Positions 5,351-27,305 of a stretch of 64,000 nucleotides of DNA are shown here, piece after piece. The position numbers and the translations under genes are program-made. Location: sequence record NC_048054.1; one strand, 5' to 3'. Numbering within the stretch: the stretch's first letter is position 1; each line of letters begins with the position of its first letter. The notes under the pieces were generated by a model, which saw only the letters and a program-made list of their open reading frames with translations, ran no database searches and had not been told where the DNA came from.

Positions 5351-5566
5351 ATGAGCAAGCATTACAATCCGTTGCTGGACAATAACTCTGTAAAGTCAGA
5401 GTCAGGAGCTAAGGGCACTGTAGAGAGCACAAGCGCATTTGTTGTGGATAGTGCTAACTACTGCCCTAAATGCAGTTCCTCAACCGTGCCGACTAAACTG
5501 CTTTCTGGTGAGGACGTAATGTTCTGCACTGGTTGCCGCGTAAGTCTCGCCATTCCGTTACAGTGA
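5351..5566 (+). CDS. Small zinc-ribbon protein
   Basis: CPKC...CTGC pairs in 71 aa. Confidence 0.6.
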   Translation: MSKHYNPLLDNNSVKSESGAKGTVESTSAFVVDSANYCPKCSSSTVPTKLLSGEDVMFCTGCRVSLAIPLQ

Positions 5567-16822: not shown

Positions 16823-17259
16823 AACGCAAATGACCGTGCCGCTGTTTGGCTTTGATCGAGCCATGCGCGGTCTACAGGTCTACACACCCGATGCACCAAA
16901 GCATGATAAGAACCCGAAAGCGTGTCGTTACTTTACGCGAGCATTCGGCGGCAAGCAGTTGGTGTGGGGATCGGAAATTAAACCTGAACGGGTCGACCGT
17001 ATTCTTAACTGAGTCTGTATTCAAGGCGTGTGCTCTGCATCGCGTTGGACTCAACGCTTGGTCCGTTCTAGGTTCGGATGTTAGTCTGCACCTATATCAT
17101 CAGTTGCGTCTGCTTGGTCTACGTTTCGTCTGTCTTGGTGATGACGATGCCGCAGGTGAAAAGTTTAGTCAGACGTTTGGACTAGGCACCACCAGCAAAG
17201 ACCTTGACGAAATGACTGACAGTGAACTTCTCGATTTAACTCTCCCATTCGTAAGGTAA
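16746..17259 (+). pseudogene. Small Toprim/primase-like gene split by a +1 frameshift
   Basis: ORF 16746-17012 (...RYFT...VWGSE) continues in the +1 frame as LNLNGSTVFLTESVFKA...GDDDAAG...KDLDE; one extra A near 16975-16982. Confidence 0.65.
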
Positions 17260-21638: not shown

Positions 21639-22029
21639 TGATGCCTCGTCAGATGAAATCCGCCGTTACTACGAGCAGATTCATCGTGATGCCGAAGCGA
21701 TCATGCAGCAGGTGTGGGCGCTTCGTGGTTGGACTGTGCGTTGGGAATGGCACAATGGCATTTGCGACGACTGCGAGTTTGTCTTTGACGAGACAGGCAA
21801 GTGTCGTGGCACTAAGTCTGACTGCATCCCACAGCAAATGGGCATAGCTGATCGCATTGACGAGCTAAAGCTGTTTGTTTCCCACACCAAGAAATCTGTA
21901 AAGATCAGCAACAAGGGCGATGCTAATCCAGTTGAAGGTAAAGGCCGTAATCTTCGGCTTGCTTATCTCGACTGGTTGCTCAACGTCGAAAAGAGAAAAG
22001 CGGAGGAAAGAACGTGCGCTGCACCTTAA
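21619..22029 (+). CDS. Hypothetical protein
   Basis: ATG 21619 in frame with track ORF 21598. Confidence 0.5.
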   Translation: MYRQLSDDASSDEIRRYYEQIHRDAEAIMQQVWALRGWTVRWEWHNGICDDCEFVFDETGKCRGTKSDCIPQQMGIADRIDELKLFVSHTKKSVKISNKGDANPVEGKGRNLRLAYLDWLLNVEKRKAEERTCAAP

Positions 22030-22535
22030 ACGAATTACCGATTAACATCACTCAGGCTGAACACATCATGGCGAGCGTGTTTACTCTTGCTGGTGCGTCA
22101 AAGTCAAAACGCCGTGCGACTGCCGCAATGTTGATTCACTTCCATAATGGTTTTCCTACCATTATCAGCAGCGGCGTGAACGGTACGGAGCCGGGTGCAA
22201 GCAACGTCATGGAAAACGAAGACCTGACGTTATCGCTCGACACCGTTATTCATGCAGAGGTGAACTGCCTCAATCGCATGGAAGAGTACAGCATGTGGGC
22301 TGACGAAGCAGACATTCTGTTTTGCACCGATTCGCCATGTCCTAACTGCTTGGCTGATCTCGAAGCCGAAGGCGTTAAGACCGTTGTGTACGCGCGTGAG
22401 TATCGCCTGACTGATCATCTGGACGCATCTCCCATCAAGATGTTCTGTCTGGATATGGACAGCGTTGTCCAGCGTATGCAGCACGGCATCGACCGCATCA
22501 AAGAAGTGATCGCAACAACACCAGCGTCTAACTAA
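22014..22535 (+). CDS. Deoxycytidylate (dCMP) deaminase
   Basis: SGVNG, HAEVN, TDSPCPNC zinc-deaminase motifs. Confidence 0.85.
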   Translation: MRCTLNELPINITQAEHIMASVFTLAGASKSKRRATAAMLIHFHNGFPTIISSGVNGTEPGASNVMENEDLTLSLDTVIHAEVNCLNRMEEYSMWADEADILFCTDSPCPNCLADLEAEGVKTVVYAREYRLTDHLDASPIKMFCLDMDSVVQRMQHGIDRIKEVIATTPASN

Positions 22536-22560
22536 GACCAATAACTGAGAGGCTCTCAAC

Positions 22561-23328
22561 ATGGAAAAGAAATTCGAATCAGATTTTAAATGCCACCCTC
22601 TGACTAAAGAACAACAGGACGAAGCGTTCCGTGCGTTCGATAGACAGCAACAAAAGTCGCTTGAGCGTCTTGCGCAGATGATTGAATCTGATCCCAAGTT
22701 GAGGGCCCAGCATGAAGCAGCACGTCGTCATGAACACCTGCAAAAGTTTGGTAGCTTGGACTTTTCCAAACTCGAAGATAGGGTTATGGCTAATGCTGTC
22801 ATGGGTAGCATGTCTTCGCCGCGCAGTAACATCGAAGAACCTTTTGGTACTTTTGAACATTCATCCGGTATCGTTCGTGGTGTTGTGCAACGCTATCCTC
22901 GTATGTCAGATAATCTGCCTCGTGATGGTCGCATTAAAGTTGACGTAGCACCAGGGAAACGTGTGATGCAAACTGATATCTACGCAGGTAATGTGAAGAC
23001 CGAAGATTTAGGCGATGCGCTTGCCGCATTTGCGTATGGCCTTAGTGGTGAACAGCTTGGCGTTATTCCTGCTGAGTCTGGCGGCGGCCAATCTACACCA
23101 GAGCATCTCCCTCTGCATTACCTGCATTCCGAGAGAGGTCCTATCGTCGATTTCAAAACAACTGGCGATCCTAAAGGCCCTCAGCCTATTGGTCGTGCGC
23201 TTCGTGTGCGCCGTGATTCTGTCTGGTCTGCTGGACGTCGTGACCGTGCTGCAACATCCGCTTCTGATCGCAAGAAGCTCCGTGCCAAAACACGCGCCCA
23301 GAAGAAAGCGCGTCGTAAACAACGCTGA
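22561..23328 (+). CDS. Hypothetical protein with PolA motif A-like segment and basic tail
   Basis: DFSKLEDRVMA; C-terminal RKKLRAKTRAQKKARRKQR. Confidence 0.55.
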   Translation: MEKKFESDFKCHPLTKEQQDEAFRAFDRQQQKSLERLAQMIESDPKLRAQHEAARRHEHLQKFGSLDFSKLEDRVMANAVMGSMSSPRSNIEEPFGTFEHSSGIVRGVVQRYPRMSDNLPRDGRIKVDVAPGKRVMQTDIYAGNVKTEDLGDALAAFAYGLSGEQLGVIPAESGGGQSTPEHLPLHYLHSERGPIVDFKTTGDPKGPQPIGRALRVRRDSVWSAGRRDRAATSASDRKKLRAKTRAQKKARRKQR

Positions 23329-23338
23329 GGTAACAGCA

Positions 23339-23827
23339 ATGATTGATCTTAAAGAAATTGCGATTCAGCGCTACCGTGCTCTTGGTCTGCCTGATGATTT
23401 TATGAATCTCTTCCCAGACGAAGACGCTACGCGTTTTGTGGAGAGTCTCTCCGAAGAGAAACGTCGCAAGATGGTTGTCGGTCTAGCGCTGCTGCAACTC
23501 CAAATTCCTGATGAAGTTCGTTTTGAGTTACTGACGAACCATCTGGACGAAACTGAGCGTCTGATTAGTACCGCGTTCGAAGATCTTACTGCCTCGCTTG
23601 TGAACAAGTTATCACATGCGAGTGATGCGGAAACCAAATCGACACTCGGTAGTGTTCGTCTGGCTATGCTGATGAACATTCTGGGTTTTGATGACGCTAC
23701 TCTCAAGGGCGTCCTTACCGATCCTATACTCACTCGTCGCGCCAGCCTTGTTGCTGTGACGTGCATGAATGAGATGGGTCAGAAAATCCAACAAATGTAC
23801 GACGAGAAAAACAATGAGCCAACCTAA
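23339..23827 (+). CDS. Hypothetical protein
   Basis: ATG 23339 with GAGG SD; the track's upstream extension overlaps the previous gene. Confidence 0.55.
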   Translation: MIDLKEIAIQRYRALGLPDDFMNLFPDEDATRFVESLSEEKRRKMVVGLALLQLQIPDEVRFELLTNHLDETERLISTAFEDLTASLVNKLSHASDAETKSTLGSVRLAMLMNILGFDDATLKGVLTDPILTRRASLVAVTCMNEMGQKIQQMYDEKNNEPT

Positions 23828-23978
23828 CAATCCATTAGCAGATTACTTCAACGCTGACGCAGTTATCCCAGGTGTAGACGACGCAGAAGATCGTGTCGAA
23901 GCTATGCGTGACGGAGGCGGCGAAGTCGTTGACGATAAAGATGCTGATGGTTGCGAAAGCGGCGCCTGTAAAATCTAA
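23814..23978 (+). CDS. 54-aa acidic protein ending in NrdA-like tail DGCESGACKI
   Basis: ATG 23814; C-terminus matches the class Ia RNR alpha C-terminal Cys pair; followed by terminator. Confidence 0.6.
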   Translation: MSQPNNPLADYFNADAVIPGVDDAEDRVEAMRDGGGEVVDDKDADGCESGACKI

Positions 23979-23981
23979 CTC

Positions 23982-24004
23982 ATGGGGCCTAGTGCCCCAT
24001 TTTT
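23982..24004 (+). terminator. Rho-independent terminator
   Basis: ATGGGGC-CTAGT-GCCCCAT then TTTT. Confidence 0.7.
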
Positions 24005-24016
24005 GTTTTGGGGAAC

Positions 24017-24547
24017 ATGATGCAAACAGCATATCGTTGTAAGCACTGTAAGTATGTCCACATCGGCAAAGTGTCCAGCTGTGACTGTCAAGGTAGTAAG
24101 AAATTCGAATACACGTTGGTGCAAATCATCGACGTGCCTGAGAACGAAGACGGTGTGCCTCCGTTCAAAGATCTCAAACACTCTCGCGCCCAACGTTACG
24201 TCAACGTAAAGAACGGAACGTATGGCAACGGCATTTATGAGCTACGTGAGAAGCGGGAAGGTGAGCGTTACTGGTGGACTCATTTAGGTCAGATGCAGAG
24301 CGGTCTGGATAGCACAGACGCAGGCTATAAGATGTGCGAAGATAACCGCAAAGCTAACTGTGTGTTAGCGGCTGCTGGTCCTGTTATGCTCGAAGCACTT
24401 TACATGACCTATCAGTATTTCCATCGCAAGCGTCTGGTGCAAGGCGATACGCCGCAGACTGCTATGCGACTCTCCATCATCGCAGATGCAATTCGTCAGG
24501 GCACAGACCTGTCTGTGTTCGATACACCGCAAGTACCGAAGGAGTAA
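24017..24547 (+). CDS. Hypothetical protein, Cys-containing N-terminus
   Basis: CKHC...CDC; ATG 24017. Confidence 0.5.
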   Translation: MMQTAYRCKHCKYVHIGKVSSCDCQGSKKFEYTLVQIIDVPENEDGVPPFKDLKHSRAQRYVNVKNGTYGNGIYELREKREGERYWWTHLGQMQSGLDSTDAGYKMCEDNRKANCVLAAAGPVMLEALYMTYQYFHRKRLVQGDTPQTAMRLSIIADAIRQGTDLSVFDTPQVPKE

Positions 24548-25189
24548 GTGATGTTTTACGATATTCTGAAAGCTGTGCCCGCAGTTATCCTGTGCTATCT
24601 TCTCTGGCGTTATGTCACGAACAAGATCGAACGTGACCGCCATCTGGTGAAAGCGCAAGAGCACTACAACTGCGGGCGTCTTGATCGCGGCAACGTCTGG
24701 GTCCACTTGAAGACAGGCCGACCGTACACTGTGTTATGTCTGACTAACACGGGCACCTCAAAGGCTGGGTGGGAAGTCAACGTCGTCTACACGAATGACT
24801 TCGAGCAGATCTACAGCAGGCCGTTCAGCGAGTTCTGCCACAAATTCACGCACGTCAGTGAAGGCCAACCATCTGAGTGCTTCAACACTACCTTGCTCGT
24901 AACTCAGATGATCAATAACACCAAACTGAGACTGCCTAAAGCTGGGGAGATTTGGGTAGAGAGTTCTGTGCGCAGCGCACCTTCTTCTGAGCTGGTCGCT
25001 CAAGGACATGTAGCTAAAGTCTTCCCTCTACGTGTGCGCATTGACCTTGTATTAGGTATGGGTCAAGCCCATCCTGTCGTTGTGTTTACTGTAAATGAAG
25101 ACTATCAAACAGCGATGTTACTTTCGCAGTTTATCTTCGTTTATCACAAAGAGGTCGAAGCCAATGACACAGCAAGCGCTAGTGTTTAA
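24548..25189 (+). CDS. Membrane-anchored protein with DUF1653-like domain
   Basis: N-terminal TM; WVHLKTGRPYTVL...VVY...YSRPFSEF. Confidence 0.5.
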   Translation: MMFYDILKAVPAVILCYLLWRYVTNKIERDRHLVKAQEHYNCGRLDRGNVWVHLKTGRPYTVLCLTNTGTSKAGWEVNVVYTNDFEQIYSRPFSEFCHKFTHVSEGQPSECFNTTLLVTQMINNTKLRLPKAGEIWVESSVRSAPSSELVAQGHVAKVFPLRVRIDLVLGMGQAHPVVVFTVNEDYQTAMLLSQFIFVYHKEVEANDTASASV

Positions 25190-25511
25190 GTACGTGATGT
25201 TCGTCCGCACTCGTAATAAAGAGCGCACGGACGGCGTACACATGCCAGTGATCTTCCCGTCGCATATCATGCACTCTGATATGGACGAAGCCGTGATTGG
25301 CTACGCGGTTTATAACGGCCACGTGGAGAATCACTACTACCAGCAGATGAAAGCTGTGTCTGCTGGCTTCATCGATCTGCGTACACTTCAATGCTTCGGT
25401 GAGTCTGAATCTCTGGAACTCAAATCACGTCCAGAAGACAGTCAGATAATTGCCGAGTATATGAAGACTCAGGGCAAAGGCGCAGAAGCTCCGCCAGAGG
25501 ATGACGCATGA
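25164..25511 (+). CDS. Hypothetical phage protein
   Basis: ATG 25164; KYV...VSAGF...CFGESESL pattern. Confidence 0.5.
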   Translation: MTQQALVFKYVMFVRTRNKERTDGVHMPVIFPSHIMHSDMDEAVIGYAVYNGHVENHYYQQMKAVSAGFIDLRTLQCFGESESLELKSRPEDSQIIAEYMKTQGKGAEAPPEDDA

Positions 25512-25849
25512 TGGACATTCTAAAAGCAATCTGGAACAGTCCTTTCTGGGACGAGCCTATCAGTGCGATGGTTGTGCCTGTTATCGTCATCAGCTATTTC
25601 ATTTTCACCGAATGGCGCGAGCGTCGCACGTTACGTCTTTCCCGTAAAGCATTCGCGGACGGCTGGGATCCAAAGAAGAACACACGCTTTCGTCACAAGT
25701 GGTTTCCATTCATGACGTGTCGCGTTGACTTCTATTCGAATAGTCCGAATGACAAGTTCACGCCGTCTGTGTTCGTACAAAGGGGTGGTGGGCGTTACGT
25801 TGAATTGCCCGCCTCTGTCTTACGTTATCGCTATAACGAGATCAAATAA
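25508..25849 (+). CDS. Hypothetical membrane-anchored protein
   Basis: Hydrophobic N-terminal segment; coupled start. Confidence 0.5.
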   Translation: MMDILKAIWNSPFWDEPISAMVVPVIVISYFIFTEWRERRTLRLSRKAFADGWDPKKNTRFRHKWFPFMTCRVDFYSNSPNDKFTPSVFVQRGGGRYVELPASVLRYRYNEIK

Positions 25850-26199
25850 TGCCTCCTGTAATTCGTTTCAACGAGCAAACCCGTGAACTGCTGAAAAAGA
25901 CTTTCGGCATTGATTCACCTTTCATTGTCGTTCGCCGCGAGCGCATCATCGAAGACGATAAGTCTTTCGGTGATCGTGTTTATTTGAACAACGGCATTCA
26001 TACCGTGACTGTGCCTAACGTACAGGGTCTCGACTTCGGCGATAAGCTGTATCTCGCCGAAGATATGGAAGTGTATGAGTGGCACTCGCACTTCGGCCTT
26101 CATCCTAACATTCATCATTCTGTAAGCAATAACCAGAAGACTGCGCTCTCGTTCGGCCTTCATCCTATTATCTACCACAAAGACAGTCGGAACTCTTAA
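25849..26199 (+). CDS. Hypothetical protein
   Basis: 116 aa, TAATG coupling on both sides. Confidence 0.5.
   Translation: MPPVIRFNEQTRELLKKTFGIDSPFIVVRRERIIEDDKSFGDRVYLNNGIHTVTVPNVQGLDFGDKLYLAEDMEVYEWHSHFGLHPNIHHSVSNNQKTALSFGLHPIIYHKDSRNS
26092..26167. repeat. 16-bp direct repeat, 60 nt apart
   Basis: TTCGGCCTTCATCCTA at 26092 and 26152, encoding FGLHP twice. Confidence 0.6.
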
Positions 26200-27305
26200 T
26201 GAGCAAACAACAAACTCTTGATCTGCGCGATCCAAATCAGTACGAACTCTACTCGTTGCATTGCGTGGACGAGCAGTACATCAATCTGGGCAACGCTATC
26301 ATGATGCACGGTACTGACGAAACGGACCCAGGCCGCACCGAAGATACATGGCGCACTCTGATTGGTATTGGCTTCCAGTTGTCTAACACGCTGATCGCTT
26401 TCCCTGCGCTGGTGTCTGCGCGTAAGAACTGGTACGCTGCTGTAGATGAAATGTGCTGGATGGCGCGCGGCGAAACGAACATCGGCAGCCTCAATTCCAA
26501 AATCTGGAACGAGTGGGCAGACGAAGACGGCGAGTGCGGTCCTATCTACGGTCTGATGTGGCGCATGTGGCCTGATATCAAAACGTTCCCGACTATTGAG
26601 TCGATGAAAGAACGTCAGATCAGCGATGCTGAAATCGAACGTATCTCCAAAGAGATCAATCGCATGAAAGCCGCTGGTTATACCGAAACACAAATGGCCG
26701 ATGGCCGTGTGTGCTACGAAGGTACGATCGACCAGTTCGCTGATGCTCTGCGTCAGGTGATGAATCGCAGTCGTTCGCGCCGCATTCGCGTTCAGGCGTA
26801 CAACCCTGCGTATCTCCACATGCAGGGTCTGCCTCCGTGTCACACCGAGTTTGAGTTCAACGTCACTAAGCCGACGCTGTACGAAGTTGCTCAGATGGAA
26901 GCGCGTCAAATGGCACCTGCCGAAGACACGTTGCATATCACTGTGACCATGCGTTCCAATGATGTGTTGCTCGGGCGTCCCTTCAACATCATCGGCTATA
27001 GCGCGATGCACCAGATGATCGCCAAGTGGGCTGGCCTGAACGTCGGTAGCTTTACGCTGAACACTACCAACACTCACCTGTATACGCATCACTTCGAAGC
27101 GTTTGAAAAGCAACGTGAGCAGTGGGCAGTTCTCGCAGACAACATGAAACGCACAGGCGAACCTGTTGTCTATCCTATGCTGGAAATCAGCGACGACATT
27201 CTCGGCCTGACGCCAGAAGAGTTGCTGGACAACGCCAACGCAGAATGGTTCCAGCTTCTCGATTATGCACCATCACCAGCGGTTAAGGGACGTGTGACCA
27301 AATGA
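26199..27305 (+). CDS. thyA: Thymidylate synthase
   Basis: EMCW, IWNEW, GPIYG, SRR, LPPCH, RSNDVLLGRPFN (dUMP-type Asn), HLY. Confidence 0.92.
   Translation: MSKQQTLDLRDPNQYELYSLHCVDEQYINLGNAIMMHGTDETDPGRTEDTWRTLIGIGFQLSNTLIAFPALVSARKNWYAAVDEMCWMARGETNIGSLNSKIWNEWADEDGECGPIYGLMWRMWPDIKTFPTIESMKERQISDAEIERISKEINRMKAAGYTETQMADGRVCYEGTIDQFADALRQVMNRSRSRRIRVQAYNPAYLHMQGLPPCHTEFEFNVTKPTLYEVAQMEARQMAPAEDTLHITVTMRSNDVLLGRPFNIIGYSAMHQMIAKWAGLNVGSFTLNTTNTHLYTHHFEAFEKQREQWAVLADNMKRTGEPVVYPMLEISDDILGLTPEELLDNANAEWFQLLDYAPSPAVKGRVTK

Follow-up and report, generated by a model that had tools for sequence, protein, structure and literature searches.

A free-standing NrdA-type redox tail in Dickeya jumbo phage AD1 and its probable link to the host ribonucleotide reductase

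Dickeya phage vB_DsoM_AD1 (hereafter AD1) is a jumbo phage of the genus Alexandravirus with a genome of 261,658 bp, and its host is the plant pathogen Dickeya solani. The window analyzed here is a stretch of 64,000 nucleotides from sequence record NC_048054.1. Its 4 kb around the gene studied (22000-26000) match AD1 at 100% identity, and positions in the window are the same as those of the record. Gene 37 (HOU09_gp037, YP_009811469.1) is labelled 'hypothetical protein' in RefSeq. The gene, the parts of its product and the neighbours to which we refer are arranged as follows.

22014-22535, plus strand: gp034, dCMP deaminase (Pfam PF00383, E = 8.6e-10).
23339-23827, plus strand: gp036, annotated gene; the product has 162 residues, is all-helical and has no known function, and the final 14 nt of the gene run into the start of gp037.
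23814-23978, plus strand: gp037, a 54-residue acidic mini-protein, stop codon included (open reading frame list and annotation).
23814-23906, plus strand: N-terminal part of gp037, residues 1-31, an acidic and hydrophobic stretch followed by a short predicted helix (family alignment).
23907-23975, plus strand: NrdA-tail-like part of gp037, residues 32-54, with Arg-Asp-Gly, Gly-Gly-Glu, an acidic linker, Cys47-x4-Cys52 and a C-terminal Lys-Ile.
23913-23924, plus strand: Gly34-Gly35-Gly36-Glu37, a family-specific motif present in 32 of 35 representatives, at which the NrdA sequence differs.
23952-23969, plus strand: codons Cys47 to Cys52, the putative redox-active pair, kept in 35 of 35 representatives.
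23982-24010, plus strand: terminator-like hairpin and T-run, with a 7-bp stem (five G-C pairs) and a 5-nt loop, 4 nt past the gp037 stop.
26199-27305, plus strand: gp043, thymidylate synthase (Pfam PF00303, E = 7.5e-56).

The original prediction had placed a 54-residue acidic reading frame followed by a terminator at this position, and both are found, the frame in the open reading frame list as well as in the annotation. It starts with ATG and ends with TAA, and its product has a pI of ~4.05, with 14 Asp and Glu residues against four Lys and Arg and with exactly two Cys residues, at positions 47 and 52. A 69-residue version reading from the ATG at 23769 is mechanically possible; the relatives conserve the start of the 54-residue form. 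Comparison with seven relatives gives dN/dS values of 0.08-0.22, and gp037 is therefore a real gene under purifying selection; both Cys codons show synonymous changes among relatives. The terminator is statistically unremarkable, as the scan as a whole returned seven sites where 5.4 were expected, which is no enrichment, and the fold z-score of this hairpin is -0.62. Its support is thus positional, and comes from its location directly after the stop codon and from the terminator annotated at the equivalent place after the homologous gene in Klebsiella phage Miami.

Just past the terminator lies gp038 (24020-24547, plus strand), whose 175-residue product begins with Cys-x2-Cys ... Cys-x-Cys in the manner of a small zinc ribbon and has a match in PHROG 1273 (function unknown, E = 5e-9); Y3, pEa_SNUABM_23 and Yoloswag also have a gene at the homologous position. 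Among the short coding sequences in the RefSeq record of AD1 there are a 71-residue 'DNA ligase' (5351-5566) and a 60-residue 'DNA primase' (16830-17012), and elsewhere in the genome CDSs of 41 and 97 residues are called baseplate wedge and tail sheath. Fragments or small open reading frames seem to have been over-annotated here.

The 14-nt overlap between gp036 and gp037 suggests translational coupling, and makes gp036 a possible partner of gp037. The order of the two genes is kept in pEa_SNUABM_23, Y3 and pEa_SNUABM_7, and all 27 homologues of gp036 are of phage origin. A Foldseek search of the PDB with the predicted gp036 structure (AF2, pLDDT 75) gave no match at E <= 0.001. Between lineages the gene ahead of the mini-gene varies. 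A dCMP deaminase gene is located within a few genes of the mini-gene in AD1, Y3, Yoloswag, JA11, pEa_SNUABM_5 and pEa_SNUABM_7, and a thymidylate synthase gene is a few genes downstream of it in AD1 and Yoloswag. AD1 also encodes a dTMP kinase and a dUTPase. In metagenomic jumbo-phage contigs a thymidine kinase, DHFR or dUTPase is found near the tail-module gene, and in contigs of ~105 kb another member of the family is 5 kb from NrdD/NrdG. The thymidylate synthase of AD1 has 368 residues compared with 266 positions in the Pfam model, and its residues 25-366 align to model positions 1-264, which implies ~80 residues of insertions; it may be a plain ThyA or a relative of the hydroxymethylase type. 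We also note an AcrVA2-like Pfam domain in a protein encoded upstream of the tail module in two metagenomic jumbo-phage contigs, two genes ahead of the module gene in one (L037:7500-8747) and ~9 kb, or some 18 genes, ahead of it in the other (L035:1044-2048).

The C-terminal tail of NrdA carries a Cys pair that is reduced by thioredoxin or glutaredoxin (Trx/Grx), swings into the active site of ribonucleotide reductase (RNR) and re-reduces the disulfide formed in each turnover (PMC11903788, PMC4078304). The last ten residues of gp037 are identical, end to end, to residues 752-761 of E. coli NrdA (10/10; PDB 2xax_A), the sole RNR match in a phmmer search of all PDB sequences. The E-value of this match is 1.6, which alone is not significant, and the likeness was therefore tested at the level of the family. 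A profile built from the C-terminal halves of 35 members of the family gives 11.9-17.3 bits at the extreme C-terminus of four diverse NrdA proteins and no more than 1.0 bit on 220 shuffled NrdA and NrdB controls, and these scores together with the ten identical residues bear out the NrdA-like Cys tail that had been proposed for gp037. The comparison also took in the NrdA tails of 80 Enterobacterales species. All 80 tails begin with Arg-Asp-Gly after the folded domain and end with Cys-x4-Cys-Lys-Ile. The loop of the tail comes in a Ser variant (67/80 species) and a Gly variant (13/80, including Pectobacterium, Brenneria, Yersinia and Tatumella), and both are found among the phage mini-proteins, in which the variants do not strictly follow the host; several occur among Erwinia phages. 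Two Rosenbergiella species have an NrdA tail in which Ala replaces the Glu after the first Cys.

With the E. coli NrdA tail (residues ~735-761) gp037 has in common the opening Arg-Asp-Gly, the acidic linker, the Cys-x4-Cys pair with its second Cys third from the end, the closing Lys-Ile and a flexible or disordered character. It differs from that tail in a linker that is ~5 residues shorter, in the Gly-Gly-Gly-Glu motif, in an N-terminal part of its own and in being without the catalytic barrel. As judged from its sequence, the end of gp037 is an NrdA-type redox tail, standing alone. With 54 residues and no match to an RNR Pfam domain gp037 has no catalytic domain, and is therefore not a member of the NrdA family; nor is it a redoxin, being too short and matching the fold of thioredoxins, glutaredoxins or NrdH redoxins in neither Pfam nor the PDB. 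Residues 1-31 are specific to the phage family and are without a counterpart in NrdA in the family alignment. Mimicry of the C-terminal tail of NrdB was considered for this N-terminal half and rejected, as a profile run on seven NrdB proteins performed no better than on shuffles. At the DNA level the last 36 nt of gp037 are identical to various nrdA 3' ends at 24-32 positions, no more than the shared amino acids demand. The simplest history is that the 3' end of an nrdA gene was captured and then evolved by itself, in an event that cannot be dated, since the DNA identity does not exceed what the amino acids require.

Similar mini-genes were sought and a family was found. By tblastn there are homologues in 84 phage records, which include Erwinia phages of several genera (Alexandravirus, Y3, Yoloswag and the pEa_SNUABM series), Dickeya phages JA11, JA13 and JA33, Serratia phage PCH45 and Miami-like Klebsiella phages; a few of the weakest of these records, mainly Proteus, Pseudomonas, Escherichia and Cronobacter phages, may be C-termini of phage NrdA. 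A word-indexed protein search yielded only two and five relatives, and only when 1.84 billion representative proteins were searched in full with an HMM were the 31 clusters of the family obtained; the match extends to the last residue in 29 of these and is weak, partial and internal in two. Scans of IMG/VR added only close relatives. Loss of the Cys pair in orthologs had been named at the outset as a possible refutation; in the 35 family representatives the pair is always kept, and its second Cys is always third from the end. The spacing between the two is four residues in 29 representatives, three in three and two in three, the last residue is Ile in 34/35 and the penultimate one Lys in 25/35. 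The Gly-Gly-Gly-Glu motif is placed 7-10 residues ahead of the first Cys, is invariant in three family alignments (A1, A3 and A4) and is preceded by a short helix and an acidic and hydrophobic stretch.

Three of the homologues (Miami gp244, Yoloswag gp34 and pEa_SNUABM_5 gp34) match PHROG 10239, of unknown function, over their C-terminal 40-45 residues with E = 2e-4 to 1e-10. No match between gp037 itself and the PHROG 10239 profile was found at E <= 0.01; it aligns over its full length with the homologues in these three phages, and is tied to the family by tblastn and by the profile search made in this work. Literature on the motif, on phage proteins acting on host RNR and on tail mimics yielded no description of a free-standing tail, and to this extent the earlier statement that such a mini-protein had not been described stands, with the qualification that the family is already catalogued, as PHROG 10239, without an assigned function.

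The tail module is also found as the C-terminus of longer proteins, in which the N-terminal regions preceding it have ~70-250 residues and are of three or more unrelated kinds. These fused domains are without Pfam matches, and Foldseek searches of the PDB with AF2 models (pLDDT ~90 for the domain of P0050) gave none at E <= 0.001. In the model of P0050 the region equivalent to the N-terminal part of gp037 forms one helix within an otherwise low-confidence tail, and the Cys pair lies in the predicted disordered C-terminus. Three homologues of gp037 and gp036 (P0007, P0034 and P0017) are listed in public databases as proteins of Raoultibacter sp. (a MAG) and of Salmonella enterica serovar Infantis; their contigs are ~266-267 kb long, and they are most likely encoded by jumbo-phage DNA that was binned or deposited as bacterial. 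Stenotrophomonas phage BUCTxx100 and Klebsiella phage Miami have equal gene coordinates at the locus, mini-proteins that differ at one residue and nearly identical 164-residue proteins upstream, and the 'Stenotrophomonas' host label of this Miami-like phage looks doubtful.

No RNR is annotated anywhere in the AD1 genome, the neighbourhood of gp037 included. Searching the whole genome by tblastn with four NrdA, one NrdB, one NrdD and one NrdG sequences gave no match at E <= 0.01, the matches obtained with five NrdA sequences are limited to their last 10-35 residues, and an RNR Pfam domain is absent from the ten largest unannotated proteins. Thus the earlier remark that no RNR domain adjoins gp037 can be extended to all 261,658 bp. 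It had also been proposed that gp037 is the split-off tail of a tailless phage NrdA encoded elsewhere, to be recognized by a missing Cys tail on that protein. AD1 encodes no NrdA to which this could apply and no RNR of any class, and the option is therefore excluded for AD1; it is ruled out equally for PCH45, which is also without NrdA. These two are the phages for which whole genomes were checked for RNR. Having none of its own, AD1 relies on the host RNR for new deoxynucleotides. A crude motif scan showed no obvious thioredoxin- or glutaredoxin-type open reading frame in AD1 or PCH45.

A further relationship is seen in Serratia phage PCH45, which carries both the mini-protein and an NrdB, with neither NrdA nor NrdD in its whole 212.8 kb.

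NC_091964.1, 124783-125889: PCH45 NrdB, 80% identical to E. coli-type NrdB, with an intact C-terminus.

Since PCH45 has NrdB without NrdA, it must use the NrdA of its host and gains from keeping that NrdA active. Proteins ~73-76% identical to the PCH45 NrdB are present in many jumbo phages (Ea35-70, OBP, pEt-SU, AH04 and Kc263) and in the 52-kb phiEcoM-GJ1 group.

Taking sequence and gene context together, gp037 probably acts on the redox relay of the host RNR. How it would do so is less certain. The role that we tentatively propose, at chances a little short of even, is that of a free NrdA tail which is reduced by host thioredoxin or glutaredoxin and helps to re-reduce host NrdA, a proposal drawn from motif identity and context. 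In such a scheme gp037 would be produced alongside the phage dCMP deaminase and thymidylate synthase cluster, and would be kept reduced by the host thioredoxin and glutaredoxin, since the substrate motif that it offers them is that of NrdA. Acting in trans as an extra electron shuttle, it could then re-reduce the active site of host NrdA while the enzyme's own oxidised tail is being recharged, with docking perhaps provided by the family-specific N-terminal part, and the throughput of the host RNR would be raised during phage DNA synthesis.

Several observations count in favour of this shuttle role. The mimicry itself, the shared geometry and the shared Ser and Gly loop variants are as expected of a stand-in for the NrdA tail, and the predicted disorder of the tail region is like that of NrdA. 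The variation in Cys spacing (4, 3 or 2) would be tolerated by a redox dithiol and less so by a fixed metal site. The absence of RNR from AD1 and of an obvious thioredoxin or glutaredoxin from AD1 and PCH45 points in the same direction, as does the in vitro finding that a second route for the reductant, operating alongside the tail, increases RNR activity up to 3-fold, an effect explained by the absence of the tail during its recharging (PMC4078304). On the other side, the active site of NrdA has the enzyme's own tail beside it at a very high effective concentration, and without docking a free tail may contribute little; no docking site was found, the N-terminal half being without similarity to NrdB tails, Pfam families or PDB entries. 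That the tail variants do not strictly follow the host also counts against a shuttle, and plain mimicry gives competition, and hence inhibition, more often than help.

This last point leads to the alternative of a decoy or competitor, in which the free tail titrates host thioredoxin or glutaredoxin or plugs the active site of NrdA. Re-reduction of the host RNR would then be lowered, or the two reductants diverted from their other clients, and the redox state or dNTP supply reshaped for the phage. The mimicry evidence is equal for a decoy and for a shuttle, competition is the default outcome for a mimic of a substrate, and gp037 is very acidic, as is the NrdA tail. With its dCMP deaminase, thymidylate synthase, dTMP kinase and dUTPase, AD1 could moreover live partly on salvaged host DNA. 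But it would seem costly for a phage without RNR and with a 262-kb genome to copy to damp the only RNR available, the NrdB of PCH45 works only with host NrdA, the inhibition of which would defeat its purpose, and neither the conserved N-terminal part nor the invariant Gly-Gly-Gly-Glu is needed in a decoy. Given the nucleotide-metabolism context and the NrdB-only genome of PCH45, which favour a helper over an inhibitor, we lean towards the shuttle and consider a decoy rather unlikely.

That the module serves as a portable redox handle, bringing the reducing power of host thioredoxin or glutaredoxin not to NrdA but to a phage protein, such as gp036 or the domains to which it is fused, also seems unlikely. 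The module is always C-terminal and occurs behind no fewer than three unrelated N-terminal regions, a distribution that fits a general handle better than an RNR-specific device. The overlap with gp036 and the conserved order of the two genes would similarly suit a handle for gp036, and by eye alone the N-terminus of gp036 resembles a portion of that of the Yoloswag and pEa_SNUABM_5 fusions; profile similarity between gp036 and the fused N-terminal domains is absent. Against a handle, the partner domains have neither Cys motifs nor a recognisable enzyme fold, the preceding gene varies between lineages, and a tail that copies NrdA to the last residue is left unexplained.

A role outside redox chemistry appears improbable. 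The Cys pair might bind a metal, or gp037 might be the precursor of a peptide that is processed after the Gly run, with the NrdA likeness arising by convergence. The small size, the acidic composition and the Gly run ahead of a Cys-containing C-terminal segment would be in keeping with a peptide precursor, and AD1 does have a radical-SAM protein, but its single gene for one (214742-216229) is ~191 kb away, the neighbouring genes have no Pfam match to a maturase, protease or exporter, and no such gene is found beside the mini-gene in any lineage examined. Two Cys residues at variable spacing make a poor metal site, and an end-to-end NrdA match that includes both loop variants of the hosts would be hard to reach by convergence. 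It is very improbable that gp037 is a functionless, decaying leftover of a lost phage nrdA: the similarity does start at the Arg-Asp-Gly closing the folded part of NrdA, as a retained or captured 3' end would, but this reading is contradicted by the selection and distribution data, in that dN/dS is low and the sequence is conserved in widely differing groups of phages and stays C-terminal in fusions; the gene also possesses a start codon and a family-specific N-terminal part of its own.

The shuttle that we propose can be set beside several known systems. The orphan NrdB of PCH45, Erwinia phage Ea35-70, Pseudomonas phage OBP and the phiEcoM-GJ1 group is similar in that the phage supplies one mobile part of the host class Ia RNR, with the absence of NrdA having been checked in PCH45, in which NrdB and the mini-protein co-occur. 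The two differ in extent, NrdB being a whole folded subunit whose role is known and the mini-protein no more than a tail. Eukaryotic RNR regulators of the Sml1 and Spd1 type are small and largely unstructured and act on the large subunit, and Sml1 acts on regeneration by the C-terminal Cys pair. Like these, gp037 is small and predicted to be largely unstructured; unlike gp037, they are inhibitors and lack a Cys-pair tail, and Pfam and PDB searches showed no sequence relation between them and gp037. In Facklamia ignava a glutaredoxin domain is fused to NrdB (PMC6187632), which is comparable in showing that components of the RNR electron relay can change from one polypeptide to another and remain functional. 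There the reductant was moved and became fused, whereas in gp037 the substrate tail was moved and set free.

RNR is the sole route to new deoxynucleotides, and the supply of phages that lack it is poorly understood. It is possible, although we regard it as doubtful, that some large phages run the host NrdA barrel by loose mobile parts, an orphan beta subunit for the radical and an orphan alpha tail for the electrons, with the latter being the first free-standing enzyme tail to act in trans as an auxiliary metabolic gene. The broader setting, phage genes that tune host nucleotide synthesis, is known, and it is the free-standing tail for which we found no description. If the proposed role is correct, gp037 would represent a new viral way to tune a host enzyme, by supplying or competing with a single moving part of it rather than the entire protein, and would offer a natural trans-acting tail for studying the re-reduction half-cycle of RNR, which is diverse and structurally elusive (PMC11903788). 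If instead a decoy is the correct reading, phages would have in this family a means of acting against the thioredoxin/glutaredoxin system. The proposed role would also provide a function for PHROG 10239, whose members occur in jumbo phages infecting plant and human pathogens; for some of these phages biocontrol use is under consideration.
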